A stretch of DNA of 64,000 nt from Anolis carolinensis (taxonomy: Eukaryota). The translations under genes were made by a program, and so were the position numbers. The notes beneath the pieces were generated by a model. It worked only from the letters and a program-made list of their open reading frames with translations. It had not been told where the DNA came from and ran no database searches. Within the stretch, counting starts at the first letter, position 1. Each line of letters begins with the position of its first letter. The stretch is taken from positions 191,162,897 to 191,226,896 of the forward strand of contig NC_085845.1 in assembly GCF_035594765.1 (NCBI RefSeq). The letters are read 5' to 3'. Shown piece after piece: positions 1,361 to 62,955 of the stretch.

Positions 1361-1614
1361 GGAGCCCCCGGGGCGAAATGGATTAAACCCTTGTGCTGGC
1401 AGGATTGCTGATCGAAAGGTCGGCGGTTTGAATCCAGGGAGTAGGGTGAGCTCCAGTCTGTCAGCTCCAGCTTCCCATGCAGGGACATGAGAGAAGCCTC
1501 TCAGACAATGGTAAAACATTTGGGCATCTGCTGGGCAACATCTTTGCGGACAGCCAATTATCTCACACCAAAAGCAACTGGCCGTTTCTCAAGTCGCTCC
1601 TGACACACAAAAAA
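1361..1614 (+). mobile_element. SINE with Sauria-like tRNA head and Vingi-derived body/tail (contains HDV-like fold)
   Basis: Head GGAGCCCCCGG..., B box GGTTTGAATCC, body GGGACATGAGAGAAGCCTC...CTGGGCAAC, tail GCTCCTGACAC-An; homologous to 8965, 42968, 56868 and 62062 copies. Confidence 0.85.
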
Positions 1615-3671: not shown

Positions 3672-5079
3672 CCTGAAAAGCTTCTGTGGTGCTTTTCCTG
3701 CTCACAGAGGTAAGATTTATAATGCAATTGTGATAATTAACGGTCACAATCTCAAATCAGTTTGGGAAGAACAAAACAGGAATCATGAGCTCAAATACTA
3801 CAGTGACATCATGTGGATTCCCAATAAAAACAGAAGGAGCAAAGTATGGTAACTCCAGATGTAATAGCTAGTATGAAAACAATGTCGTCTTGACATGTAA
3901 AATGAATTTCAGATCATGTAGACTTAGTCAAAATCGTTAAGCATAGTTTTGTTTCTTAGGATGCCTGTTTTTACAGTCATTAGCGAAATCAAAATGAATT
4001 TCTACCAGATAATTGTATTCCTGTGAGCCTCTGGTAATTAGGACAAATGCTCCATTGCTACATTTCTCCTTTTGCCAATTAGAACAAGCCAATTAATTCT
4101 AATTTGCAGAGTGTTTTGGAAAGAAAGGGACTATTGGAGAGAATACTGAAGTTCTGAGAGCAACAAGGTCAGCAAAGAACCTTAAATTGAGCTGAAAGGA
4201 ACAATTTCCATTGTCCCAGAAGTGTAAATCTAAGAAATTGCTATATATTTGAATACTAGTAAATGTTGGTGGTGGTTGCCACATTTGATGATGTAGTTCT
4301 CAAGTTTTGTTGAAATAACCAGATGGCATTTCTGCTCTGGATTATTTGGTGGTAATTCCATTCTCCATCATCTTTTACAGGAACATTTTGAAAATCGAAG
4401 TATATGAGTGGAGGCAAGTGGACACAGGAGAGACTACAAATGGGCAATTCCCAGAACCAAGTGTGGAGCCCTGCTGTGAGTATTCTAGCTTCTTTGTTCC
4501 AGTCTGGAAACACCTAGGAGCAACAATGACATGCTGAATATTTTCTATGCGCATTCAGCAAGCCTTGTGCTAAATCATATTGCTCAAACCTTTTTGGGAT
4601 ATTAGAAAGCACTTGCAACATGTGATCATTTTAAACAGGAGTCGTAAAAATGCTGTGAAGGGAAAACTCTCAATGGGTTCTGTAGTTCCTTTGTGTTAAT
4701 AATTGCTAAATTATTATCATTTAATAGGGTAAGAAGAAACACCTTGAAAATAGTGTGTGAACTTTTCCCGCTGGGGAGAAAAGAAACACATTTTCTACTA
4801 ATTCTCATTAGTATCCCATTGCTTATATTGACAGTTCATGGAAGAAGTGTGCACAAATGTAGGACATAATGTCTAGACCTTTCTCCTCATCTATGTCATC
4901 TGCACAGTTCTCTTCCTGCACACAGAGGTGTTTATTTCATACCTATACACCTGTGCATGTTTAGTGTTGTTATCTTACAGATGTTGATGTATCACATATA
5001 GGATGCTGTGTGAAAGCAAATAGCCCATAAAAGACTTGAATGGAGTTAGCAGTTCTGCCAAAACCACCAGATTCTAGGT

Positions 5080-5341
5080 CAGCGTTTCTCAACCTGAGGG
5101 TCGGGACCCATGGGGGGGGGTCACGAGGGGGGTTCAGAGGGGTCGCCAAAAATTAGTATTTTCTGTTAGTTGTGGGGATTCTGTGTGGGAAGCTTGGCCC
5201 AAATTCGATTGTTGGTGGGGTTCAAGGGGCTCTTTGATTATAGATGAACTATACATCTCATCCAAAATGTCAAGTTCTATTTTCCCCAAACTCCACCAGT
5301 GTTCAAGTTTGGGCATATTGAGTATTTGTGCCAAGTTTGGG
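5080..5341 (+). mobile_element. Non-autonomous hAT (Charlie-type) element, one end only
   Basis: Terminus CAGCGTTTCTCAACCTGAGGGTCGGGACCC of the CAGxGxTTCTCAAC class; second terminus not found. Confidence 0.7.
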
Positions 5342-6489
5342 ATGACAGACAGATCTGGGATGAGAAAGGATAGATATTGGCTTCAGGCACCTAGGGTTAT
5401 GGACCCACACCCAGAACCTGGAGAATGACCCAAATCACACACAAGGCTTACAATTGAGGTGATGAGCAGTGAAGGGTTCAGGTCTGCGCTCAGTCCATTT
5501 TCCATCCTCTGTTCCCACTAATAGGCATTTGTTTCTAGTTTTGGAACAAAAGGCTGTTGGGAGTTCAAAAGAGGTGGTTTGGATGGTATGGATGACATAG
5601 ATTCAGTAAACTCTTCCTCCATGAATGGTGCCACCACAGACTGGCCATGACAGCCATCAGCCTTGGCGCATAAATAATAACGGCTCTACAAAAGGCACAC
5701 AACATGTCGGAGATATTTGTGAAAAGTAGACCCCTATTTATATCTAGCTAGCTACAAATACAGCCGCATAACAGTCATCAACTTTGCAGACAGTATTATC
5801 ATCTTCAAAGTTCCATATACAAACTATTTTCAAACAAAGGAATGACTCTTGTGTATTCCTGAGTTTTCTGATAAAAGGAGTTACCTTGCTTCTTGCAGGT
5901 GACATATTTCAGATACTGAGCATATTTCTACAACTGGTAAACTCTGAAATCCCTGAAGGTCATATTTGAGAGGGAGGGCGCTTAAAGAGCAGACCTGAAT
6001 ACTGAAAACCTTTTTAGAACACACATTCACGTGTGGCTGCGCATCCCAGGAGGAAATAGATATGTGCAGCTACCAAAAAGACGGGGAAAGGAAAAAGAAA
6101 TGCTTCTTATGTATCTCATTTCAAGGTCTGTCCTTTTTTATGTTGGCAAAAAACTCATAAGCTCGAGACAGTCTAAGAGGGTTTTTTATAAAGAAAAAAA
6201 GAAAAGAGAAAGATGAACCTGCGGAATTGTAGTCCAGCACAAGAATTAGTAAAAAGAAAGCATCTCATGACAGTGGGGCAAGGAGTGCAGCTGTGTTTCC
6301 GCTCAGATTTTAACGGAGCTATCCAACATACTGAACTCTCTGCCTCCCCCGCCCCCAAGTCACCCTATTTGGTTCACTGCCTTGGGTGTTGTCTGTACAG
6401 GTGAATTTTCCTGGTCCGTAGTGATCACGTTAACATCATACAAGTCCTTATTAAACTGAGGTGAGAACAGCATTAAGAATCACACATTT

Positions 6490-6580
6490 CATAGAATCAT
6501 AGATTAATAGAGTTGGAAGAGACCTCATGGGCCATCCAGTCCAACTCCCTGCCATGCAGGAACACAGAATCAAAGCACCC
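6490..6580 (-). mobile_element. CR1 LINE extreme 3' end
   Basis: Reverse complement of the CR1 tail (GGGTGCTTTGA...GTTGGACTGGATGGCCCATGAGGTCTCTTCCAACTCTA...ATTCTATG). Confidence 0.85.
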
Positions 6581-6729
6581 TCTATGCGAGGCCACACCAC
6601 TGTTAAAGTGCACTCCTGCCATGATCACACGTGCTATACTTTGCATTATTTCTGTCCACTCATTTGTGGCTGTTCCAGTTTTTTTCTCCTTCTCATGCAT
6701 GCAAGTATATGCATTATATGGTGATAGGG

Positions 6730-7063
6730 AATGGCCATGTATAAATATGTGAGGGGGAGTCATAGGGAGGACGGAGCAAGCTTGTTTTCTGTTGCCCTGG
6801 AGACTAGGATATGGAACAATGGCTTCAAACTACAGGAAAGGAGATTCCACCTGAACATGAGGAAGAACATCCTAACTGTGAGAGAGAGCTGTTCAGCAGT
6901 GGAACTCTCTGCTCCGTAGTGTGGGGGGCTCCTCCTTTGGAGGCTTTTAAGCAGAGGCTGGATGGCTATCTGTTGAGGGTGCTTTGAATGCAATTTCCTG
7001 CTTCTTGGCAAGGGGTTGGACTGGATGGCACGTGAGGTCACTTCCAACTCTATGATTCTATGA
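6730..7063 (+). mobile_element. CR1 LINE 3' fragment
   Basis: Encodes [12 protein letters not shown]...[14 protein letters not shown] (CR1 ORF2 C-terminus) followed by 3' UTR and ATTCTATG tail. Confidence 0.93.
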
Positions 7064-7930
7064 AATGCTGGTACACAAAGTTGCACCCATAACGATAAGC
7101 AATTATAAGTACAAACACACCTTTAAAAACAATGGTAACGGTAACTGCACAAATGCTCAATTAAAAAGTACCGTTGGTTGCATACCAACTGCATGCATTT
7201 CATGGTGAAAGGGGTCCCATCTACCTGTGCCACTAAATGCACCCAAAACCCCACACTCTGGTTCAGACTAGAAAAGTGCAGAGTTAACTTGGATTTAAGT
7301 TCCCAGGGTGGAAATGACTGAATTAGATTTGCCTGCGCAGATAATGTCTTGGATGCCTCATTTAAAATATAGATTAAAATCAGGGTTGGTTTACCACTGA
7401 GATGACATAGAAGTAACCATCATCCACAGATCAAGTGTGCAAATGCCTGCAATGGTGGCTGGCTACTCTGTCCCATTACATATGAAGCATAAGATGGAGA
7501 AAAACCATTCTTAGAGCAAAACGATTAAGCAGAGGTTATAAATTTCTTCCTATTTTTGACTTACTTCCAGCTACTTTTCTCACCAGGCAAATCCATATTA
7601 GGTTCAGGTGACTTACTGGGTCAGGGAAAAAAGCACCAGGGTTTTTTGATTCACAGGGACAATGATGCTTGCTATCTGAATTTCACTCATATGTTGCTGT
7701 TTCATTTGACCTTAGCTGCAGGCCTCACAACTAGAGAAGCCCCAAATCATATTTAAAAACTGGCAACTGAACAGCATCCACCATCTCACCTGAGGGTGCT
7801 AGGCTAGTTTTAGTGGCATGTGATATACAGAATTATGTTTGGTGTATATCAGTGTGACTGCCCCACTGATCTACCAACTAGGTAGTGTCCTAGCCTAACA
7901 AAACGAAGTGTGATGAATATGAGCAAACAC

Positions 7931-8144
7931 GCGCAGTGTGGTGGTTTGAGCCTTGGACTGTGACTCCGGAGACCAGGGTTTGAATTCCCACTCAGCCACA
8001 AAACCCATTGGGTGACCATGGGGAAGCTGCACTCCCACAGGCTCAAAGGAAGGCAATAGCAAACCTTTCCCCCAGAAAACCCTGGGATAGGTTCGCCTTA
8101 GGATCACCATAGGTTGGAAATGATTTGAAGGCATACAACAACAA
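7931..8144 (+). mobile_element. tRNA-derived SINE with RTE-like tail
   Basis: A/B boxes (TGGTTTGAGC; GGGTTTGAATTCC), GGAAGGCAATAGCAAAC motif, tail GTTGGAAATGATTTGAAGGCATACAACAACAA. Confidence 0.8.
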
Positions 8145-8499
8145 GGTCTGGTGAGATTTTTGGTCACTATTTATATCTAGACTGATTTACTTTTCTTTTT
8201 AAGCCAGAACTGAGTATCTGGGCATATGTGATAAAAAGTTGGGTAGCTCACATCCATAAGCACACATACACCGTCACCCAGCTGTTTTAAATTGAGTCAT
8301 CTTCTCTTTCTGCTTGGCCAACATACTCGGTTGATTTAACAGTGATACATAAGTTCACCTAATCTCCCAAGTTCTTTGCAAACAAATCAAATATCAAAAA
8401 TTCAAATAGATATTCTTTGTCTTACCATATAAGCTGAATGGGAACACTTTTTTCTCTTTCACTTTTTCAGAGCATCTATACTAGGTGGTCCTAAATCTT

Positions 8500-8929
8500 A
8501 TAGTAACCTATGGATGTGAGAGCTGGATCATAAGGAAGGCTGAGTGAAGGAAGATAGATGCTTTTGAACTTTGGTGCTGGAGGAAAATGCTGAGAGTGCC
8601 TTGGGCCGCAAGAAGATCCAACCAGTCCATCCTCCAGGAAATAATGCCCGGCTGCTCACTGGAGGGAAGGATATTAGAGGAAAAGCTGAAGTATTTTGGC
8701 CACATCATGAGAAGACAGGAAAGCTTGGAAAAGATCATGATGCTGGGGAAAATGGAAGGAAAAAGGAAGAGAGGCCGACCAAGGGCGAGATGGATGGATG
8801 GTATCCTTGAAGTAACTGGCTTGACCTTGAAGGAACTGGGGGCAGCAACAGCCGACAGGGAGCTCTGGCATGGATTGGTCCATGAGGCCATAAAGAGTCG
8901 GAAATGACTGAATGAATAAAGAAGAAGAA
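8500..8929 (+). mobile_element. RTE-BovB clade LINE 3' fragment
   Basis: ORF 8587-8907 LRVPWAARRSNQSIL...KLKYFGHIMRR...GKRKRGRPRARWMD is the typical BovB RT C-terminus; tail GAGTCGGAAATGACTGAA. Confidence 0.93.
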
Positions 8930-8964
8930 AGCTTATTTAAAGCTATTTTGAACATATTTCACTA

Positions 8965-9203
8965 GGAGCTGCAGTGGCGCAATGGATTAAACCCTTGTTT
9001 CGGCTGAACTGCTGACCTAAAGGTTGGCAATTCAAATCCATGAGACGGAGTGAGCTCTCATCTGTCAGTTCTAGCTCACTTGCAGGGAAAGAAGAGAAGC
9101 CTCCCAGCACATCCGGGCATCCCCTGGGCAACGTTTCTGTAGATGGCCGATTCTCTCACACCAGAAGCAGCTTGCAGTATATTTGCTTCTGACACGATTA
9201 AAA
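8965..9203 (+). mobile_element. SINE with Vingi-derived body/tail (HDV-like fold)
   Basis: B box variant; GCCTCCCAGC...GGGCATCCCCTGGGCAAC...GGCCGATTCTCTC; tail GCTTCTGACACGAT; TSD AACATATTTCACTA / AACATATTCCACTA. Confidence 0.85.
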
Positions 9204-10067
9204 AACATATTCCACTAAGCTGTGTGTGTGTATTCTTCTACATATACACACATAGGTATTTATCTGGGAGAAATATGTATATAGATATGTATACCTCTTA
9301 TGTTTCCATTGAGATGCTACACTAATAAGGTTATTTTGTAAGCACAAAAGTTTTTGTTTTCAGATCCTGCATTACAACTCGACTCTTTCATTTTCAAAAT
9401 TATGAACAGTAATGTCATGTTATTAAAAATATCTAATCTTGACGGTATTAGGGTATGCAAAACAGAAAGGAAATCACCAAAGGCTTTCAGCTCTAGGTCA
9501 AAGGAGCGTTGTTTGTCTCTTATTAGCATGACGAAGTGAAGTCTGCAATTATATTAGAAGTCTGGTTAAGGCATAATTAGTAGGGAGCCTGTGCATTTGC
9601 AACTACCATAGTTCTCACAGAGCAGCACATTCAAACTGCAGTCTCATAGAGAAAATGTTCCCTTTAGTATGGATTTCTGTCTCCCAAGAAAGACAAAATA
9701 AGATGGAAGCTTGTTGTGCTCGCATTTGTTTCTAAAACTTTTTGAAACTCTTCTACTTTAATTGCAATTAGATCCATAGCATTTTTACAATACTGGTCTC
9801 AACATGTGTGGTAGTTTTTTTATTTGTTGGAGATGGGAAGACCTCTTGAAGGTAGGCATGGTGGAAGGATGAATGGGGGGAATTTGTATGTGTCTCATGA
9901 TATATGATGTTAGGATTTAAAACCTGCAGTATGTGAGAACATTAAGCTGAAATGTGGCCGGTGTCATTGTTATAGGATTCTGCTCTCCAAATGAAATCAT
10001 GTTCCCCAAACTTCTCAGACCTCTAGCATTATAGTAACTTCAGTTGAGCATTTAGAAATATCATAAA

Positions 10068-10209
10068 GGCCCCTTCTACACTGCCATATAAAATCCAGAT
10101 TATCTGCTTTGATTATATGGCAGTGTAGACTCCTATAATTCAGTTCAGAGCAGACAATGCATCTTATCTGCTTTGATGATCTGGATTATATGGCAGTATA
10201 GAAAGGGCC
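10068..10209. mobile_element. PIF/Harbinger-type MITE
   Basis: TIRs GGCCCCTTCTACACTGCCATATAA / TTATATGGCAGTATAGAAAGGGCC; family recurs several times in the window. Confidence 0.8.
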
Positions 10210-10575
10210 ATAGACATCCAAAGTAAACAGTGGGCAAAGTTATCAAGGGAAAGCAGAATAATTCTAGGTTTGAAGAATTTTAGTAAGACCATGGAAACCA
10301 TACGAGCAGTTTCATTTGCCCATCTGTGGTTTCAGGGGGAAATTATCTTTCTAGGAATTTGTTAGGTCCTTCAGGCAATTATATGGTTTGCATCCCCCAG
10401 AGATTACCATCAAGCCACCCAGGACAACTCCATAATATGCTGATGTGAGAAGTTAGCTACTTTCATGATGTTTGGTTATCTCCTCGATTTCAGGTAACTG
10501 TGATGCAACCAGGAAAATACTTCCTGTGGCTATATAGGTCTTACTGCATATCACTCTCTGCAAAGCTAGACATTT

Positions 10576-11023
10576 GGGGCCGGGCTGTGGCACAGGCTGT
10601 TGAGCAGCTGCAATAAATCACTCTGACCATGAGGTCATGAGTTCGAGGCCAGCCCGTGGCGGGGTGAGCACCCGTCAATTAAAAATAAAAAAAATAGCCC
10701 CTGCTCGTTGCTGACCTAGCAACCCGAAAGATAGTTGCATCTATCAAGTAGGAAATAAGGTACCACTTATAAAAGTGGGGAGGCAAGTTTAACTAATTTA
10801 CGACCTGGAATGAGGAAGTGCCGTCAAAGTGGATGATGAAGCAGCTGCTCCCCCTGTGGCCAGAATCGAACATCCCCTCAGAAGAAGGTTAAATTGCCTC
10901 TGCGTCTGTCTGTCTCAGTCTCTGTTTGATGTGTTTATGGGCATTGAATGTTTGCCCTATGTGTGTATAATGTGATCCACCCTGAGTCCCCTTCGGGGTG
11001 AAAAGGGCAGAATATAAATACTG

Positions 11024-11058
<35 letters not shown>
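10576..11058 (+). mobile_element. Anolis SINE2-like element (tRNA head, L2-type tail), long form
   Basis: Head GGGGCCGGGCTGTGGC, B box GAGTTCGAGGCC, tail CCCTGAGTCCCCTTCGGGGTGAAAAGGGCAG...(TAAA)n shared with L2 3' ends in this window. Confidence 0.9.
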
Positions 11059-12379
11059 AATTGAGAGCTGAAATTTATTTGGGGAGCAGAATTCTCATTT
11101 GCAGGGAAAATGCCCTGCTTTTGCTTCCCACCCCCCAACTTCATATCTGGATTCTGCCTTTGACTACTCAGCTCTGATCTGGAGATTATGGGAAAAGAAA
11201 TCATGACAGTAAGGGAGCCTCTTTGTGCCAGTAGAACAGAGGAGTTCCCTTGACTCAGGAACCCAAGTGCCTTGGGTTGGTTTTGAAATAGCAACTTGTA
11301 AGCCTGTCTATGTACTGTGTACATGTTTTCAGAAGCAGCTACACAAAAGTAGCAAGTAAGTCACAAACATAATGTGTAAACTGAACCTCAGTGTGCATTT
11401 TTTATTTGTTCCAGTTGTATTGGTTCATCTTAAGCTCCGCATCCTGCCCCACCTTTACTCAGACACAGTCTTTAATCTCCAACTTCTTTGCACTGAAATT
11501 GACCCCTCCGACTGGAACAGGGACATGAGAACACACTGCGAGTTCAAACAGATGAGGTTCTGCATAATAAGTACATGGACTTTCTCTCGTCTCTTTTCCT
11601 TAATTCTTTTGCCTGGGAGCTTCCACTCTGAGAAGATGGAAATTTCACGGAGTGATGGATAACATACCTTAGCCTCTTAGTGTTTCCACCCTCTGAGGAA
11701 GAAGCAAGAATGAAACCCTTTGCCTACTAAATTCAAATCAATGCTATTTCACAGCCTCCCAAAGCCCAGCTTCCGATGCTGAGATCCCAATCTAAACCCT
11801 TCTGTATTTTTATTCTGAAATACAAAGCCCAACAATGTTCACTGGGTAGAGAATTAGAAAACAGTGACTAACAATGTGAAAATAATTCTTGTTCTGAAAT
11901 TTCATCTCTGGAAAACCATCTTCATTGTCTTCATTGGGACAAGCAGAATATCTCTCCTCCCAATATTGTTTCTTCCATCACGGGAGAGAAAATCTTCCAT
12001 CTCAATGGCACTTTGGAATGAGACTTTTATATTTATACTCAAGTGCTCTACAGCTCCTCCTCCAGGAAGATGGAACTGACCAATCAGCAGGATAGATATA
12101 TTTAGGGGAGGAGCCTGTGCAAAGTACCAGGACCTGACGTCCTAGAAGGCAGTCTAGACCCAACTATATAGCACATATTCCTGTCTTTCACAGTAATATC
12201 ATTATTTTGTCAGTTTTCAGCCACTAAACTCTAAGTAAGCCAAAAACCTGATAATTACATAGTCATAACAAAAGATCACAACAATAATTCTCAACAAATA
12301 TAAGTCATATTCAATGCACTCAACACATCTGAACAATGCCTTGTGATTTTCTGCTACTAACTGAGCATTCCTATGATGC

Positions 12380-13058
12380 TAAATGGCTCCGCCCCAGTTT
12401 ACCTGTCCAAATGCATCTCCCTATACAAACCACTACGAAGACTAAGATCCGCTGGGAGGCCTTGCTTTCAGTCCTGCCACCATCACAGGCATGTTTGGCA
12501 GGGACAAGAGACAGGGCCTTCTCAGTGATTGCCTCCCAGCAATGGAGCTCCCTCCCTGGCAAGATTAGATCAGCCCCCCCCCCCCATGTCCTTCAGAAAT
12601 ATGGTAAAGACCTGGCTGTGGGACCAAGCCTTTGGGGCAGTGCAATGAGGCAATAATAGGAAACCTACTCTGCTCACCTGAGCCAGCATGGTGTCCTGAG
12701 TTGGTTTAAATAGCTAATTGTATAGTAGGAATAACTGATTTTAATATTTGTGTATATTTATAATTACTTTATGTCCTGGCATGGAGTGCTTGCCGTTTAT
12801 TTATTTATTTATTTACAGTATTTATATTCTGCCCTTCTCACCCCGAAGGGGACTCAGGGTGGATCACATTGCACATACAAAGCACACATTCAATGTCATA
12901 ACACAGAACAGAGACAGAGGCACGGGCTGACCTCGAACTCATGACCACTTGGTCAGAGTGATTTGTTGCAGCTGGCTGCTAACCAGCCTGTTGTGCTCCG
13001 CCCTGAGTTCCCTTTGGGGTGAGAAGGGCAGAACATAAATGTTTTAAATAAATAAATA
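12380..13058 (+). mobile_element. L2 LINE 3' fragment interrupted by a SINE
   Basis: Translation includes L2-type AGTRDRAFSV...WSSLP; resumes after the SINE with CGCCCTGAGTTCCCTTTGGGGTGAGAAGGGC and (TAAA)n. Confidence 0.85.
12796..12989 (-). mobile_element. Anolis SINE2-like, short form, nested in L2
   Basis: Reverse complement of the 49201-49438 type. Confidence 0.85.
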
Positions 13059-13149
13059 CATGATTGCCGATGGCCCGGAAAGTACACAACACCTAATTCA
13101 TATGAATTTTACCTGGTCCACACATACTGGCTCTATCTTAAATAAGTGG

Positions 13150-13620
13150 CAACCAGGCTGAACAAATTCAGTTTCCTAAACCGCTCCTCATAGGACCTGG
13201 CCCTTAGCATTTTGGTCACCCTTCTCTGGACATACTGAATGAATTGTTTATTGTACTAGCCATAGGCCATGACATCAGTAATATACAACCTTTATAAGCA
13301 CTTTCCAATATAAACATTAAAACTTATTAAAAAAATTAAAACTAGCTCTTTAAAATTATGATAACAGCAACATAACAATGACAGTGTCTGATTTGTATCA
13401 TCCCAAACCATCACCATTTCCATTTCTGACCTCAAGTATGGAATTTGCTACTTTAGCTCTGATCTTTTGGTCTGCAATTGCAAATGTGGCAACCTTTAGT
13501 GTTATATTTTTGGAATAATCTGCTAGCAAGTCACAGATCACAGCAGATTGTTGCCATTGTTCCAGCTTCAATAATATCCTTCTTTACTCTGGTGTCCAGA
13601 ACTGGACACAGTATTCAGAT
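13150..13620 (-). mobile_element. Degenerate CR1 pieces (about 13150-13234 and 13590-13617) flanking an unrelated LINE-like 3' end
   Basis: CR1-like CCGCTCCTCATAGG...CTTCTCTGGAC and GTCCAGAACTGGACACAGTA; insert starts with reverse tail TTGTTTATTGTACTAGCCATAGGCCAT. Confidence 0.5.
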
Positions 13621-14684
13621 TACTTTCTTAAGAGTTGATCATTGACCTCAACTGTTGATTGTTTTTTCAGTGGGGTGTCTTGACATATCTAAATACGCTT
13701 TCATGTGTAAGACTGATACATTTGCTATTATTCTTTACACCCCTACCTAAGATAGCAGTTGATATGGAGGTCCCATACCCTTCAAATACAAGTCTCCTCG
13801 TGAGGTTCTAAAGATCACTATATGCTTCAAGGCACAAGTTAAAATGGTGATACTGATCAGAAAATGCCTGATTCATATGCACTCTGCAAGACACAAATGG
13901 AGATTATGCTTCAGTTCCACACAACGCTAGTACAAATAGAGCACCAACACAGGGGAGACCAATTTAATGAGCAGTTAACATCTAGTCATAATGCTCCTTT
14001 CCAGCAAAGTACTAAAGAAATAGGAGAAAGGCCTGTGCAATGACTCAGTTCTTGTGATTTTGATATTCACGCATCCACCAACTTTACAAATTGTGGGGAC
14101 CCAGGTTCCAGTCAGGAGTCTGTATGTGCAGGTGGATGGTTGAATGAAAGGGAAACTCCAAGATTTTTTTCAAGTCCATATAATGAAACTTTAGCAACAA
14201 ATCAATATGTCAGAGAATTGTGGAGCATTTCCTAACCTTGCTGGAGGCGTTCATCCGCATGCCCGACTACTTACTGCCTTCACTTTTTAATGCTGCCTTG
14301 GTGATTTTTTTCTCATGCTTATTGCAAGCCCTCCTTACAAGTATGAGAAAGCACTGAAGAATACAATTTTGGAAGGAGTGGGAAACATTTGTATTTTACA
14401 TTTGCTTTTGACAAAAAATAAAGTACTCTCATTATAATCATTGGTTAATTCTTTTCAATATTATTTTCCCTTTCTCTGTGCCAAAAAGATCAGCAGGTAC
14501 TCAGAGCAAGTCATCGCTCTAGACGCTGCATTTAATATAATTATAAAGAATTCAGCTGCTTTTCATCTGGCTGGCAGAGCGCTTACGGTATAAGAATATT
14601 TGTTGGATTTTTACATTATAAAAATTTCATGGCAACATTTAGGGGCAAGCTAGATAAAGTATTCAGTATGTTGTGTTGTCGCCC

Positions 14685-15256
14685 AAATAGGAATCAAGGA
14701 ACATGAAAGGCACTGCAGACTAATTCAATCAGAGAAATCAGCCATAGCAGAGCACCTGATGAACCAACCTGGTCACTGCATATTATTTAAGAACAGAACA
14801 ATGCTGGACCACTGTAACAACCACCATGTCAGACTACACAGAGAAGCCATTTCAATAGAAAGGAGGAAACCATAAAATGAATAAAATCTGGCTACCAGTA
14901 TTTTTAAAAAAATCTAAAATCAGGACAGTAAATAAATAACAACACTCAGAAAACAGGAGAATTCCAGTCAACAATCAGGGCCAGCTAACACCTCCCAACA
15001 AAGGATTCCCCCAGGCAGGAAGCAGCCAGGCTATTCAATGCTAATGAAGCTGGCCAATTGCACCATTCACACTTGTCCCAGGCAGACAAGAGTTCTTTCT
15101 CCCACCCTAGACATTCCACAGATATATAAACCTCCCTCGTCTAGTTTCCAATATACCTCGCAAGCTCTGAGGATGCCTACCATAGATGCGGGTGAAACGT
15201 CAGGAGAGAATGCTTCTGGAACATGGTCATACAGCCCGGAAAACTCACAGCAACCT
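14685..15256 (+). mobile_element. Penelope-like element (Poseidon type) 3' part
   Basis: Translates to RIKEHERHCRL..EKSAIAEHLMNQPGH...RLHREAI (GIY-YIG endonuclease C-terminal half); terminal repeat carries a hammerhead core. Confidence 0.9.
15163..15206 (+). ncRNA. Minimal hammerhead ribozyme motif (Penelope-associated, degenerate)
   Basis: CTGAGGA (15167-15173), stem II GCCTAC/GCGGGT with mismatches, GAAAC-GTC with predicted cleavage after C15201. Confidence 0.7.
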
Positions 15257-15348
15257 GTTCAGTATGTCTTGGAATTTTGCATCTCTATGTAACTAACAGC
15301 CAATGACGAGGTAATAATTTACAGAATTTCTGCAGGTTCCTGACACAA

Positions 15349-15411
15349 TCCTCCTCCTCCTCCTCCTCCTCCTCCTCCTCCTCCCCCTCCTCTTCCTCCT
15401 CTTCCTCCTCT
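15349..15411. repeat. (CCT)n microsatellite
   Basis: Direct inspection. Confidence 0.95.
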
Positions 15412-16999
15412 CTAACAGGGAAGATTCCCCATTTCTACCTACTAGACATTTTCTCCCAATAGAAGTAGTAGTTTCAGAAGGACAATCATTGTCTGGCCTG
15501 CAATGAAGGTGGGAAGACAAGGTTGCTAAAGTTACGTTTTGGACTATGATTCCTAGAATAAGCACAGCTGGATTGACTGCGAGGTTCTCAGAAGTAGAGT
15601 ATCCAAAAAGTAACTTTTCAAAGCTCTACAAAAGGGATTTACTGGTCCCATCTGCTGAGATCTTGATAAGTATGGCACATATACACACAAATACACCCAC
15701 TGTGATTTTCATTTTTAAAGACAAAAACTTCACATTAAATACAAAGGTATTTAATGCACGATCTAGATTGAGAAATCCGTGGTTACCTTTCATACTTGGA
15801 GAGAGCATTTGCTTTGCCATTGACCAACAGCCATCTATATCAACAAGTTCCAAGTTCAAAAGAGAACAACAGAGTCTCAAACCGATTCTGTTTGAACTGC
15901 TTAACAAAAGCCACAAAGGAATGTTCCCATATTTTAGATGACGAAATGGCACCAGCGAATTGGCTGTGATCTCTCCACATTTGACTGAATCAAGGACCTT
16001 TTTATCGCTTTTTTTCTTCTTCTCAGCTTCACCCCTGTTGAGTGATCTTGATATGAAATCCAAACATTATCCATGGTTTACTTCCAGCCTGGGCCTGGTT
16101 TGCTGAGATTAAGAATGAAGAAAGGCACAACTTTTTTTTCTAGCAGCACGTCCTATTTCAGAGCAATTGAAGCAGACGCAATCAAACAAGTTTCTTAATA
16201 TCTGAGGATCCTGGAGAGCAAACATAATAATTTAAAGATAATTAAATTTTGAAATGTACAAATAGTGGGATTAGATATTTAAGAATCAAAACTGCAAATC
16301 CGGACTTGACCCCTATTGCTAGTCCAAATTACAATAGACCGACTGTATCAGTGGGATTTGCCTACTTCTTGACTCATGATTCAATAAGTAATTCAGTAGG
16401 TCTATTCTAACTGAAAATGACCAATAAAATTTAAGCCTATATTTTCCAGTTGACAAAAAGCAATGGCCACATCCATATGGAACAGGACCACCGAGATTTC
16501 CTGCTCTCTTTTTGCCGGGCAAAGTGAAATTCTGAAAAACTTCAATTTCGAAAATGCACATTAAATATAGTCACTCTCAAAGAACTATATTTTATTGAAA
16601 CCCTGATGTTAAACAAGCTAAGATATGAAATAATCTTTTGATTGAGTCTTCTTCCCAATATTGCAACCCACAGTTTTCCAAATGGGAAAGAAGCCTGAAG
16701 CCCATCCTGCTTTGTTGTCATATAAGGGGAAACATGTTTCCTGATCCTTGCCGATTGGATCATATGTGGACAACATGACGGTTATTGACAACACGCTAAT
16801 AGGAGTAGTAATGAATTTACTCTGGGAGGTTTTTTTTTTCTACAGAGCTATTGAAAATCTTGAATCTTTTTTTTGAAGGTAGCTTGAGGATTAAAGTGCA
16901 GACTAAAACCCAGAATGGATTTCTTGTCCCATCACCATAGAAACTATATATTCAGGTTTTGCTATTTTCACTTTTGAGTGCTCTATCTGATGTATCTTA

Positions 17000-17663
17000 G
17001 GGACCTTCCATACAGCCATATAACCCAGAATATCAAGGCAGATAATCCACAATATCTGCTTTGAACTGAATTATCTGAGTCCACACTGTCATATAATCCA
17101 GTTCAATGTCAGCGTGCTGGAAGAAGCAAAGACCACCAGCATTGAAACAATGCTCCTATGCCATCAACTCCGCTGGACTGGCCACGTTGTCCGAATGCCG
17201 GATCACTGTCTCCCAAAGCAACTACTCTACTCCGAACTCAAGAACGAGAAACGTAATGTTGGTGGGCAGGAAAAGAGATTTAAAGATGGGCTTAAAGCCA
17301 ACCTTAAAAACTGTGGCATAGACACTGAGAACTGGGAAGCCCTGGCCCTTGAATGCTCTAATTGGCGGTCAGCTGTGACCAGCAGTGCTGCGGAGTTCGA
17401 AGAGGCACGAATTGAGGGCTTAAAGGAGAAACGTGCCGAGGAAGGAGCGTCAAGCCAACCCTGACCGAGACCGCTTTCCATCTGGAAACAGATGTCCTCA
17501 TTGCGGGAGAACATGCAGATCAAGAATAGGTCTCTTCAGTCACCTGCGGACACACCCCCAAGGCCCTATAACTGGAGGACCATCATCCTCAGTCTACGAG
17601 GGATCGCCTAAGTAAGTATAATCCAGTTCAATGTGGGTTTTATATAGCTGTGTGGAAAGGGAC
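17000..17663. mobile_element. Harbinger-type MITE split by an RTE insertion
   Basis: Left GGGACCTTCCATACAGCC and right GCTGTGTGGAAAGGGAC termini; the two halves match the intact copy at 58648-58786. Confidence 0.85.
17110..17616 (+). mobile_element. RTE clade LINE, 5'-truncated
   Basis: LRWTGHVVRMPD...KRFKDGLKANLK and CPHCGRTCRSRIGLFSHLRTH zinc finger; (TAAG)n tail; 18-bp TSD TATAATCCAGTTCAATGT (17092-17109, 17617-17634). Confidence 0.95.
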
Positions 17664-17684
17664 ATAGATACACTGGGATATGCT

Positions 17685-18598
17685 TTACTTACTTACTTAG
17701 GCAATCCCTCGTAGCTCGAGGATGATGGTCCTCCAAGTGTAGTGTCTTGGCAGTGGATACGTAGGTGGCTATGGAGATCTATTCTTGACCCGCATGTTCT
17801 TCCCCAGTGAAGACATCAGTTTCCAGATGGAAGGTGATCCCAGTCAGGGTTGGCTTGACACTCCTTCCTCTTAAGATGTTTCTCCCTTTCAACCTCCATT
17901 TGTGCCTCTTCAAATTCTGCAGCACTGCTGGTTACAGCTGACCTCCAGTTAGAGCGCTCAAGGGCCAGGACTTCCCAGTTCTCAGTGTCTATACCACCAT
18001 TTTTGAGGATGGCTTTAAGCCCATTTTTAAATCTCTTTTCCTGTCCATCAGCATTACATTTCCTGTTCTTGGGTTGGGAGTATAGTAACTTCTTTGGGAG
18101 ACGGTGATCAGGCATTTGGACAACGTGGCCAGTCCAACAAAGTTGATGGCGTAGGAGCATCGCTTCAATGCTGGTGATCTTTGCTTCTTCCCGCATGCTG
18201 ACATTTGTCTGCCTTTCTTCCCAAGAGATTTGCAGGATTTTTCGGAGGCAACGCTGATGGTATCTTTCCAGGAGCTGAGTGTGACGTCTGTAGACAGTCC
18301 ACGTTTCGCAGGCATATAGCAGGGTTGGGAGAACAATAGCTTTATAAACAAGCATCTTGGTATCCCTATGGATGTCTTGATCCTTGAATACTCTCTGCTT
18401 CATTCAGAAAAATGCTGCACTCGCAGAGGTCAGGCGGTGTTGTATTTCAGCGTCAATGTTGACTTTTATGGAGAGGTGGCTGCCAAGGTAGTGGAAATGG
18501 TCAAAATTTTCTGTTACACCATTAAGCTGTATTCCTGGCATTGCAGAGGGATTGGGTGATAACTGCTGGAAGAGCACTTTGGTTTTCTTGATGTTCAC
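17685..18598 (-). mobile_element. RTE clade LINE, 5'-truncated
   Basis: ORFs 18404-18616 (NIKKTKVL...FHYLGS) and 17816-18403 (TKMLVYKAIVLPTLLYACETW); reverse (TAAG)n tail. Confidence 0.95.
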
Positions 18599-24924: not shown

Positions 24925-26035
24925 TAATCAATCAATCAATCCAACTTTATTTATATCCTGTCCCATCTCCCCATGGGGACTCAGGGCAGCTTACAACATG
25001 AAGGCAGCATTTGATGCCTCAAAAATAATCAGCAATAAATTGAACAATAAATAAACAATATAAGCATTCTATCATAAAATAAATCATAATAAAAACCAAT
25101 AAAACATTTTCCGCAACAACAATAAAACGGGTTAAAAGCCATATCCATAGTTAAAAAGGCCCCCCTGGTAGCACAGTGCATTAAAGGGCTGAGCAGCTGA
25201 ACTTGCGGACCAAAAGGTCCCAGGTTCAAATCCCGGGAGTGGAATGAGCACCTGCTGTTCGCCCCAGCTCCTGCCAACCTAGCAGTTCGGAAACATGCAA
25301 ATGTGAGTAGATCAATAGGTATCGCTCCGGTGGGAAGGTAACAGCACTCCATGCAGTCATGCCAGCCACATGACCTTGGAGGTGTCTACAGACAACGCCG
25401 GCTCTTCGGCTTAGAAATGGAGATGAGCACCAACCCCCAGAGTCGGTCACGATTGGACTTAATGTCAGGGTGAAACCTTTACCTAACCTATAGTTAAAAA
25501 GCCATACCCAGAATTAAAAGCCACATCCATAGAGGTTTTATTTTTATATTTGGTAAAGCCAGATCTTCAACCCTTCGGGTCTTCATATACCTGGGAGCAT
25601 AGGTAAGTTTTTAATTGCCATTCTAATCTCCTTCGGGAGAGAGTTCCAGGGGCGAGGGGTGATTACAGAAAAGGCCCCCTCTCTCGTCCCCAGTAGCCAG
25701 GTTTGGGATGGGGGTGGGATTGAGAGGAGGGCCTCCCCAATGAACACAATATCCAGGCAGGTTCATACAAGGAGAGGCAGTTGGTTGGGTAGTCTGGACC
25801 TGAACCGTTTAGCACTTTAACAACCAGCGCTTTGAATTTCACCTGGTAGCAAACTGGAAGCCAGTGGAGCTGCCTTAGCATGGAAGATGTTCTCTCCCTG
25901 TATGGCACTCCTGTTAATAACCTGGCTGCTGACCTCTGGACCAGCTGACGCTGCTGAGCACCCTTTAAAGGCAGCCCCACATAGAGCATATTGCAGTAGT
26001 CCCATCAAGATGTAACTAAGGCATGTACTACCATG
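24925..26035 (-). mobile_element. L2 LINE 3' fragment with nested Sauria SINE
   Basis: ORF 25663-25989 LYVGLPLK...LVQRSAARLLTG...LRQLHWLPV (L2 RT C-terminus); reverse L2 tail at 24945-24996. Confidence 0.9.
25159..25489 (+). mobile_element. Sauria SINE, full length
   Basis: tRNA head with B box GGTTCAAATCCC, characteristic body, BovB-like CAGAGTCGG..., ACCTTT tail; TSD ATAGTTAAAAAG (25147-25158, 25490-25501). Confidence 0.95.
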
Positions 26036-26163: not shown

Positions 26164-26310
26164 NNNNNNNNNNNNNNNNNNNNNNNNNNNNNNNNNNNNN
26201 NNNNNNNNNNNNNNNNNNNNNNNNNNNNNNNNNNNNNNNNNNNNNNNNNNNNNNNNNNNNNNNNNNNNNNNNNNNNNNNNNNNNNNNNNNNNNNNNNNNN
26301 NNNNNNNNNN
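26164..26310. other. Assembly gap (147 N)
   Basis: Run of N. Confidence 1.
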
Positions 26311-26485
26311 NAATCAAATGATACAACATAGCAATTTTCAAATTGAGATTGGTACCATGGAAAATGAATCTGTTGTTTACCATGGAATATAGTGAATGAA
26401 TATACAATAAGTGATCAATCAAATAATACAACTTAGCAATTTTCAAATTGAGATTGGTGCCATGGAAAATGAACCTGTGTTTACA
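26311..26485 (+). repeat. Imperfect direct duplication of about 69 bp, period 106 bp
   Basis: AATCAAAT...AGCAATTTTCAAATTGAGATTGGT.CCATGGAAAATGAA starts at 26311 and 26417. Confidence 0.9.
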
Positions 26486-42967: not shown

Positions 42968-43713
42968 AGGAGCCCCTGGTGGTGCAATAGGTTAAACCCT
43001 TGTGCTGGAAGGACTGCTGACTTGAAGGTTGGGTTGTTGACCTGACGATTGCCAGTTCGAATCCGGGGAGAGTGCGGATGAGCTTCCTCTGTCAGCTCCA
43101 GCTCCCCATGCGGGGACATGAGAGAAGCCTCCCCCAAGGAGGGCGACTAAAATGATTAAGGGTCTGGAAAACAAGCCCTATGAGGAGAGGCTTAAAGAGC
43201 TGGGCATGTTTAGCCTGCAGAAGAGAAGGCTGAGAGGAGACATGATAGCCATGTACAAATATGTGAGGGGAAGTCATAGGGAGGAGGGAGGGAGCTTATT
43301 TTCTGCTGCCCTGCAGACTAGGACACGGAACAATGGCTTCAAACTACAGGAAAGGAGATTCCACCTGAACATCAGGAAGAACTTCCTCACTGTGAGGGCT
43401 GTTCGGCAGTGGAACTCTCTCCCCCGGACTGTGGTGGAGGCTCCTTCTTTGGAAGCTTTTAAGCAGAGGCTGGACGGCCATCTGTCGGGGGTGCTTTGAA
43501 TGCGATTTCCTGCTTCTTAGCAGGGGGTTGGACTAGATGGCCCATGTGGTCTCTTCCAACTCTACTATTCTATGATTCTATGATTCTATGATTCAAGGAT
43601 GGTAAAACATCAAAAACATCTGCGTAGCCCCTGGGCAACATCCTTGCAGACGGCCAATACTCTCACACCAGAAGCGACTTTCAGTTTCTCAAGTTGCTCC
43701 TGACATGAAAAAA
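42968..43713 (+). mobile_element. Vingi-type SINE interrupted by CR1
   Basis: Halves 42968-43140 and 43594-43713; TSD ACTTGATTA (42959-42967, 43714-43722). Confidence 0.92.
43141..43593 (+). mobile_element. Young 5'-truncated CR1 LINE
   Basis: Uninterrupted ORF 43152-43499 ([27 protein letters not shown]...FKQRLDGHL); (ATTCTATG)n tail; TSD CAAGGA (43135-43140, 43594-43599). Confidence 0.96.
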
Positions 43714-43787
43714 ACTTGATTATTTAAGGCAACATTTTAGCTTAATTGCTTTTAAATCTTGCAAGCCACTTTGAATCCCATCTTTCA

Positions 43788-62061: not shown

Positions 62062-62301
62062 AGGAGCCCCCAATGGCGTAGTGGACTAAAGCCTCGTGAC
62101 TTGAAGGTTGGGTTGCTGACCTGAAAGCTGCCAGGTTCGAATCCCACCTGGGGAGAGTGCGGATGAGCTCCCTCTATCAGCTCCAGCTCCATGCGGGGAC
62201 ATGAGAGAAGCCTCCTGCCAGGATGGTAAAACATCAAAACATCCGGGCATCCCCTAGGCAACGTCCTTGCAGATGGACAATTCTCTCACTCCAGAAGCGA
62301 C
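62062..62301 (+). mobile_element. Vingi-type SINE (HDV-like fold at 62194-62287)
   Basis: B box GGTTCGAATCC; CGGGGACATGAGAGAAGCCTCC...GGGCATCCCCTAGGCAACGTCCTTGCAGATGGACAATTCTCTC. Confidence 0.88.
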
Positions 62302-62312
62302 TCATGTTGCTT

Positions 62313-62955
62313 CCACCCCGGAAGGGACTCAAGGTGGCTTACACATGGCATTTGTTCAATGACTTTGGAGAACATATCAAACATAGGTTTAAAATATTTA
62401 CATATTAAAATTCGTACAATGACATTAAAACCTTATTATCAGTTAAAATCATGTCATCCAAAAATCGTAGTCTAGTGCCATTCCATGGTCATTGCACATA
62501 TTACATATGTTTTTGCACTGCGCTGAGAGGCCACCACCGAGAAGACTGACACTCGTCTCTGCCAGCCATGCTTGAAAAACAGGCGGGATCGAGAGCAGGG
62601 CCTCCTCAGATGATCTTAATCTTCGAGGTGGTTCATAAGGGAAGATATGTTCAAACGAGTAAGCTGTGCCAGAACCAATTAGGGCTTTCTAGGCTAAAGC
62701 CAGTACTTTGAATTGTGTTTGGAAGCAGAATGGCAACCAGTGGAACTGGCTCAACAGGGGAATTGTGTGCTCACTGTACTCCGCTCCGGTGATCAATCTG
62801 GCTGCCGCTCATTGGACCAAACTGAAGCTTCCAAACAGTCTTCAAAGGCAACCCCACGTAAAGCACATTGCAGTAATCTCTACAGGATGTAACCAGAGCA
62901 TAGACCACCGTGGCCAAATCAGACTTCCCAAGGTAAGGGTACAACTGGTGCACAA
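62313..62955 (-). mobile_element. L2 LINE 3' fragment
   Basis: VHQLYPYLGKSDLATVVYALVTSCRDYCNVLYVGLPLK in ORF 62771-63028; reverse L2 tail at the left end. Confidence 0.88.

Follow-up and report, generated by a model that had tools for sequence, protein, structure and literature searches.

We identified, inside a high-copy SINE of Anolis carolinensis, a module attributed to the 5′ end of a Vingi LINE that is predicted in silico, at the level of the family consensus, to have the double-pseudoknot fold of HDV-like ribozymes. The link to Vingi comes from the published description of the element. The predicted fold is HDV-like with an additional hairpin in L3, is internal to the SINE and is without the G·U pair of the cleavage site, and the module probably no longer cuts. 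The SINE itself is known. The fold within it appears to be undescribed in the searchable literature: a full-text search returned no paper that links Vingi to a ribozyme or lizard retrotransposons to HDV-like ribozymes, and a search for sequence strings returned nothing relevant.

Five copies of one tRNA-headed SINE were identified by blastn and direct reading in the 64-kb window (the whole stretch of DNA analysed here), all on the plus strand. An earlier note on this DNA had listed these five copies, and its body coordinates are correct to within one base (the body of the third ends at 43664, not 43665).

1361-1614, plus strand: SINE copy A, a complete copy including tail and A-run; body 1480-1564; no 8-nt duplication in the L3 hairpin
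8965-9205, plus strand: SINE copy B; body 9083-9157; short L3 without the 5′ half of the hairpin; variant tail
42969-43714, plus strand: SINE copy C; body 43111-43664, interrupted in L3 by a CR1 3′ end (43141-43599)
about 56870-57087, plus strand: SINE copy D; remnant of the body at 56979-57034, carrying two internal deletions
62063-62302, plus strand: SINE copy E; body 62194-62287; tail cut off at 62302

Each copy starts with a tRNA-like head that has Pol III boxes; behind it come about 45 nt of C-rich linker, then the body (75-94 nt) and finally a tail that ends in an A-run. The body opens on the position we call +1, which is a C in all copies (1480, 9083, 43111, 56979 and 62194 in copies A to E), and closes on the last base of the P2 3′ strand (1564, 9157, 43664, 57034 and 62287). 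All five copies are decayed, mainly at CpG sites, and copy D is without the P2 5′ strand, P3, the start of L3 and the P1 3′ strand.

The CR1 3′ end within L3 of copy C (43141-43599, plus strand) is flanked by a CAAGGA target duplication and has a terminal (ATTCTATG)n. An open reading frame at 43152-43499 probably represents what is left of the C-terminal part of the CR1 ORF. Elsewhere in the window, positions 26164-26311 are a run of 148 N (an assembly gap or masked sequence).

The element is of the SINE2-1_ACar type, assigned by its description rather than by alignment to the Repbase consensus. A SINE origin from a tRNA, a Vingi 5′ region and a Vingi 3′ region was reportedly published by Kojima in 2011. 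SINE2-1_ACar is described as a tRNA fused to both the 5′ and the 3′ region of Vingi-2_ACar (Kojima 2015, PMC4494074), and SINE2-1_ACar and SINE2-1B_ACar are given the same tRNA and Vingi-2 origin (Kojima 2018, PMC5786205). The tRNA head, Vingi-2_ACar 5′ middle and 3′ tail described for these two Repbase elements fit the architecture of the copies in the window; no ribozyme fold appears in those papers. The earlier note had proposed just such a fusion of a tRNA head with a Vingi 5′ part and a 3′ tail, which agrees with the published origin (PMC4494074, PMC5786205) and hence is not new. The window itself contains no Vingi sequence and no ORF of at least 200 amino acids, and its ten longest ORFs have no Pfam domain.

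Copy E, the last in the window, serves here as the reference for coordinates. Its parts outside the body, read directly, are as follows.

62063-62150, plus strand: tRNA-like head, with A box at 62074-62084 (TGGCGTAGTGG) and B box at 62134-62144 (GGTTCGAATCC)
62151-62193, plus strand: linker between head and body; its last base, the -1 position (62193), is G
62288-62302, plus strand: start of the LINE-type 3′ tail, which stops at 62302

The head contains both Pol III boxes, and ARAGORN calls no tRNA on it; it is thus tRNA-derived and not a tRNA gene. Position 62063 is the 5′ end of the family: in the DNA runs, 110-122 contigs have AT-rich loose ends there. The linker of copy E is short of two C that are found in copies A, C and D and in the loose-end consensus of the family. 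As far as CAGCTCC, the linker is common to a different tRNA-headed SINE at 25160-25480 (plus strand), which has a related linker (GAGCACC...CCCCAGCTCC) and an unrelated body. This relationship indicates that the head and linker are older than the fusion with the Vingi module. At the other end, family contigs continue past 62302 with the normal tail (as seen from loose ends) and copy E continues with unrelated sequence. No tail match was found downstream of copy E in the window, and this looks like a deletion or rearrangement at its 3′ end (62302-62420).

Since each single copy is damaged, the family consensus is needed to read the fold. To obtain family-majority letters, we turned to four public runs of this organism and used the contigs that are at least 80% alike to a 251-base stretch. 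Each run contributed 4,654-17,808 such contigs, a high copy number that accords with five copies in 64 kb. The fold elements predicted in the body, with copy E coordinates, are listed below.

62194-62200 with 62249-62255, plus strand: P1; 5′ strand C GGGGA C, in which 62194 is +1, a C
62203-62209 with 62281-62287, plus strand: P2; GAGAGAA/UUCUCUC, 7 bp
62210-62212 with 62246-62248, plus strand: P3; GCC/GGC
62213-62245, plus strand: L3; begins UCC, contains the inserted hairpin and has G 62245 as its last base
62214-62215 with 62256-62257, plus strand: P1.1; 3′ strand AG in copy E, GG in the family
62221-62225 with 62240-62244, plus strand: L3 hairpin; GGAUG/CAUCC, loop with the 8-nt tandem duplication
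62249-62255, plus strand: P1 3′ strand; AUCCCCU in copy E, GUCCCCU in the family
62258-62275, plus strand: GCAA followed by P4 (62262-62265 with 62272-62275); CGUC-CUUGCA-GAUG in copy E, 3′ strand GACG in the family
62276-62280, plus strand: J4/2; G-A-C-A-A in copy E, G-C-C-A-A in the family, with 62277 the equivalent of the catalytic C75

Copy E differs from the family majority at seven body positions, and the family letters improve the fold. At 62249, 65% of the family has G in place of A, which gives P1 a sixth Watson-Crick pair (GGGGAC/GUCCCC, 6 bp). At 62256, G in place of A (98% of the family) restores the GG of P1.1; at 62274, C in place of T (70%) gives P4 as CGUC/GACG; at 62277, C in place of A (98%) restores the catalytic C. 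The family letters at 62216, 62217 and 62219 give the start of L3 as UCCCACAA. The majority sequence thus has a P1 of 6 bp, a P2 of 7 bp, a P3 of 3 bp, a P1.1 of 2 bp (CC/GG) and a P4 of 4 bp in the canonical strand order of a nested double pseudoknot. Copy E alone has 5 bp in P1 and 1 bp in P1.1.

Throughout the family, the catalytic C precedes N-A-A and the P2 3′ strand (GCCAA in 98% of contigs); in copy E this arrangement is broken by the A at 62277. The earlier note had recognized this change of C75 to A, and the family letters show it to be private to this copy, along with the G to A change in P1.1. With these private inactivating mutations and its truncated tail, copy E (body 62194-62287) is an old, dead insertion and likely functionless. 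The by-eye consensus of the earlier note was upheld and improved by the family letters, and its assertion that every HDV element occurs in order within the SINE body holds element by element.

The SINE body resembles the genomic HDV ribozyme (Rfam accession RF00094) in both layout and letters. The elements follow in the same order (P1, P2, P3, L3, P1.1, P4, J4/2), with 6-7 pairs in P1 and 3 in P3. Letters identical between HDV and the SINE family include GCC-UCC, GGC, U-GGGCAAC and GGC-N-AA, the last with the catalytic C followed by N-A-A. The body differs from HDV in that a C faces a U in place of the G·U pair, the -1 position is G, P4 is short and no Rfam model matches at threshold.

Several observations bear on whether this likeness could have arisen by chance in a body unrelated to ribozymes. 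First, we used a core descriptor of 23 letters common to the family and HDV (GCCTCC and GGC separated by a gap, then six unspecified letters, T, GGGCAAC and, after a second gap, GGCNAA), for which 0.00 matches are expected in shuffles of the window. Across all IMG/VR viral contigs, it matched six loci: the 1,682-base HDV genome, at its genomic ribozyme, and five apparent chance matches. Second, the family majority matches this descriptor and also scores 12 of 13 P1 and P2 pairs. Among the matches listed, a score of 12 was reached by 3 of 126 descriptor-matched background loci (viral and metagenomic), and these three include HDV itself and one probable genuine HDV-like ribozyme. Finally, pairing in register occurs in 81% of cells in the window copies, vs 37-48% when the 3′ partners are slid by one to three columns; it reaches 90.5% in P2 and 100% in P3.

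Other comparisons gave weaker or null results, some of which speak for chance. Against the curated covariance models of Rfam, the window has no match at gathering thresholds. For copy E no HDV family is reported at E ≤ 10. For copy B the best of 4,227 families is RF02682 (HDV-F-prausnitzii), which aligns end to end and in the same register but sub-threshold, at 12.2 bits vs a threshold of 44. The fold of a single copy has a z-score of only -1.6. We also derived a covariance model (R1) from the window copies and ran it on 100 loci; it misses HDV, which scores 10.9 bits in the wrong place and not above noise (L002). With an effective number of 2.2 sequences, R1 contains too little variation to be other than sequence-specific, and its result is thus uninformative either way. 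A 20-letter family-specific pattern has no match in viral contigs and six chance matches in bacterial genomes.

The earlier note had looked to covariation as a check on the helices. Among the window copies this check came out negative, with 0 compensatory pairs and differences that are CpG decay. None is expected among these copies, because they differ by neutral post-insertion decay, mostly at CpG sites.

We consider chance a very improbable explanation for the body as a whole. It would have to account for 23 core letters in HDV order and spacing, for 12 of 13 P1 and P2 pairs and for P3, P1.1 and P4 besides, in a module whose described source is the 5′ end of Vingi, a LINE clade whose sister clade has a proven HDV-like ribozyme. 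At the level of sequence and predicted pairing, the body does resemble HDV, and by far more than chance would give.

In metagenome contigs, the descriptor returned, among the matches listed, chance matches and two or three unrelated HDV-like candidates. Three of these matches have a P1 of 6-7 bp and a P2 of 5-6 bp (L010:319-402, minus strand; L028:3064-3133, minus strand; L070:2099-2184, plus strand). No long reverse transcriptase ORF adjoins any of the three, and they may be genuine HDV-like ribozymes unrelated to Vingi.

A further departure from HDV is in L3, which in the SINE body holds a hairpin of 16-24 nt, vs 7-8 nt for the whole of L3 in HDV. L3 measures 25-33 nt in total (14 nt in copy B), begins with UCC and ends in the G that adjoins P3. 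Its hairpin comes in at least three lengths in the family: a 6-nt loop in copy A, a loop with an 8-nt tandem duplication in copies C, D and E, and loss of the 5′ half in copy B. The 8-nt unit (AAAACATC) occurs twice in copies C, D and E and not in copy A. L3 without the duplication is also common genome-wide, with loose ends at 62235 in 80-84 contigs of two DNA runs. Both loop forms are abundant across the genome and so mark subfamilies. The earlier note had counted the hairpin among the changes by which the ribozyme was disarmed. The hairpin is indeed present; because its length varies within the family, however, it is not a disarming change specific to the SINE.

The cleavage site departs from HDV as well. 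The C at +1 faces a U at the close of P1, forming neither the G·U wobble nor any other pair, and this is true of each of the five window copies as well as of the family majority. Variants at the site are C to T at 62194 and G to A at 62195, both of CpG type and each at about 20%, and no G at 62194 reaches 10%. The observation in the earlier note that +1 is C instead of G is therefore true of the whole family. The -1 position is likewise G in all five copies.

Work on related ribozymes gives some indication of what these letters would mean. In HDV-derived ribozymes, a G beside the cleavage site is described as required for an ‘essential’ G·U wobble (PMC1634876). HDV activity depends on the -1 letter, ranking U > C > A > G and dropping by more than 25-fold (PMC1874588). 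Single mismatches in P1 abolished in vitro cleavage in the R2 element of the horseshoe crab and in other HDV-like cases, and about one-quarter of R2 ribozymes have one or two mismatches in P1 (PMC3774820). The ribozyme of L1Tc (L1TcRz), in the sister Ingi clade, is active and cleaves 5′ of a C1 that lies in a G-C-paired P1 (PMC3185411); in trypanosomatid ribozymes, the G-C pairs of P1 are in reverse orientation (PMC4035085). A C at +1 is therefore not inactivating in itself, since L1TcRz has one. Because C1 of that active ribozyme is paired, it is the C-U mismatch, not the C, that argues for a loss of activity in the SINE.

We accordingly weighed whether the module might still be a slow or conditional ribozyme that cuts some SINE transcripts between head and body. 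Such cleavage would release headless RNAs that behave like internally deleted non-autonomous Vingi elements. The family consensus does retain the catalytic C, P1.1, the UCC of L3, P3, a 6-bp P1 and a 7-bp P2, and the L1Tc ribozyme (PMC3185411) and the mismatched quarter of R2 ribozymes (PMC3774820) set precedents for a C at +1 and for imperfect P1 helices. However, the C facing U is a mismatch, neither wobble nor Watson-Crick; the -1 G is the worst letter for HDV (PMC1874588); and single P1 mismatches did abolish cleavage in vitro, in horseshoe crab R2 and elsewhere (PMC3774820). The tRNA-like heads are kept in all five window copies. No class of loose ends at 62193-62196 is among the best-supported ones, unlike the SINE 5′ end at 62063, although counts from contigs set only a weak upper bound. 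We regard continued cleavage as unlikely. The ‘disarmed’ reading of the earlier note is plausible.

A second feature upstream of the body was considered as a possible silencer. The 3′ end of the linker (CUCC in copy E, CUCCCC in the family majority) is followed by AUG and is able to pair with the P1 5′ strand. The resulting UCCCC-AUGC-GGGGA hairpin, with -8.4 kcal/mol vs -11.8 for P1 as a duplex, is found in copy C as well as in the family majority and is weaker or absent in decayed copies. Upstream sequence modulates the HDV and L1Tc ribozymes (for L1Tc, PMC3185411), and this hairpin would form first in transcription, making it a reasonable kinetic trap. A comparable arm nonetheless arises in 3.4% of shuffles of the C-rich linker, and the hairpin is partly made of linker common to the different SINE at 25160-25480. 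The earlier note had suggested that the hairpin sequesters the P1 5′ strand; it does exist in the family majority, and its sequestering role is weakly supported, given the 3.4% chance rate and no covariation. With a partly pre-existing linker and its weakness or absence in decayed copies also taken into account, we rejected the hairpin as an established feature designed to silence the ribozyme.

Related retrotransposons provide several parallels. L1TcRz, also called Pr77, occurs in L1Tc, NARTc and SIDER elements of the Ingi clade in trypanosomatids. It is an HDV-like ribozyme that starts at nucleotide 1 of the LINE and has C at +1, as in the SINE, and it too has been passed to short non-autonomous derivatives (PMC3185411, PMC4035085). 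It differs from the SINE module in that it stays at the very 5′ end, is active and has its C1 in a G-C pair, whereas the SINE module is about 130 nt internal, below a tRNA-like head, with its C facing U. R2 SIDEs (PMC3414825) and RTE-derived SINE bodies (PMC5786205) are likewise non-autonomous and carry a LINE 5′ part that is an actual or predicted HDV-like ribozyme. In R2 SIDEs the ribozyme remains active and at the 5′ end, unlike the internal module of the SINE. In RTE-derived SINEs, the captured 5′ pieces often do not include the extreme 5′ end of the LINE, possibly avoiding the ribozyme (Kojima, PMC5786205).

Kojima also pointed out that SINEs would be truncated at the 5′ end by a working ribozyme within them, and included RTE among the ribozyme-bearing clades that he listed, but not Vingi (Kojima 2018, PMC5786205). 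In the alligator element SINE2-1_AMi, homology to Vingi-2_Gav begins at LINE position 2 (PMC5786205, Table 2). A match from position 2 fits the capture of a ribozyme-processed RNA minus its first nucleotide.

These comparisons suggest a route by which the module could have entered the SINE and spread. The layout would be that of a Pol III head and linker joined to a Vingi LINE 5′ module and a Vingi 3′ tail. The module would have been captured from about nucleotide 2 of a ribozyme-processed RNA of Vingi, or of an internally deleted Vingi; the capture may have occurred by template switching onto the RNA of a tRNA-derived SINE. In the SINE, the module retains the whole core (the C75 equivalent, the UCC of L3, P1.1, P3 and the J4/2 A-A), with C facing U where HDV has the G·U pair of the cleavage site, and with G at -1. 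The version that spread would be one that cleaves poorly or not at all. Head and tail would thus stay together on one Pol III transcript, which Vingi proteins could retrotranspose through the 3′ tail, and the fold itself would simply be inherited. We think it somewhat probable that the module is of this kind, cleavage-impaired and inherited from the Vingi 5′ end, which would let Pol III transcripts stay whole. A more specific version holds that the template switch which gave rise to the SINE took place precisely at the Vingi 5′ end left by ribozyme cleavage, and that only a junction destroying the G·U pair was survivable as a Pol III SINE; we put this forward tentatively and consider it more doubtful than true.

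The disarmed fold may, in addition, have been retained because it gives the Vingi machinery a structural handle. Under this explanation, which is the one offered by the earlier note and could hold alongside the one above, selection removed cleavage and retained the fold for a non-catalytic task, such as being recognized by Vingi protein, pairing with the tail or protecting the RNA. Two published observations are in its favour: SINE2-1_AMi of the alligator retains a Vingi 5′ fragment without a Vingi tail (PMC5786205), and gene-writing systems based on Vingi-1 retain the native 5′ UTR on their RNAs (PMC13708176). The observations, however, would fit plain inheritance by a young, fast-spreading family as well as selection; the length of L3 varies freely within the family; and no covariation is seen. 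Selective retention therefore seems to us rather improbable, and inheritance of a cleavage-impaired Vingi module remains the reading that we prefer.

The same catalytic core with and without its cleavage-site pair would amount to a natural experiment on the +1 and -1 context and on an unusual L3 hairpin, and a 5′ module that is self-cleaving or tightly folded would matter for construct design. The predicted fold also provides a possible mechanism by which the 5′ ends of LINEs turn into SINE bodies, a question that Kojima (2018) left open. If the template-switch reading is true, SINE bodies made from LINE 5′ ends would be fossils of ribozyme processing. This would help to explain Kojima's puzzle that only the 5′ regions of RTE and Vingi became SINE bodies, with Vingi then joining the ribozyme-bearing clades. 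If the fold is genuine, HDV-like ribozymes would extend to the Vingi clade and would be found inside a high-copy vertebrate SINE.
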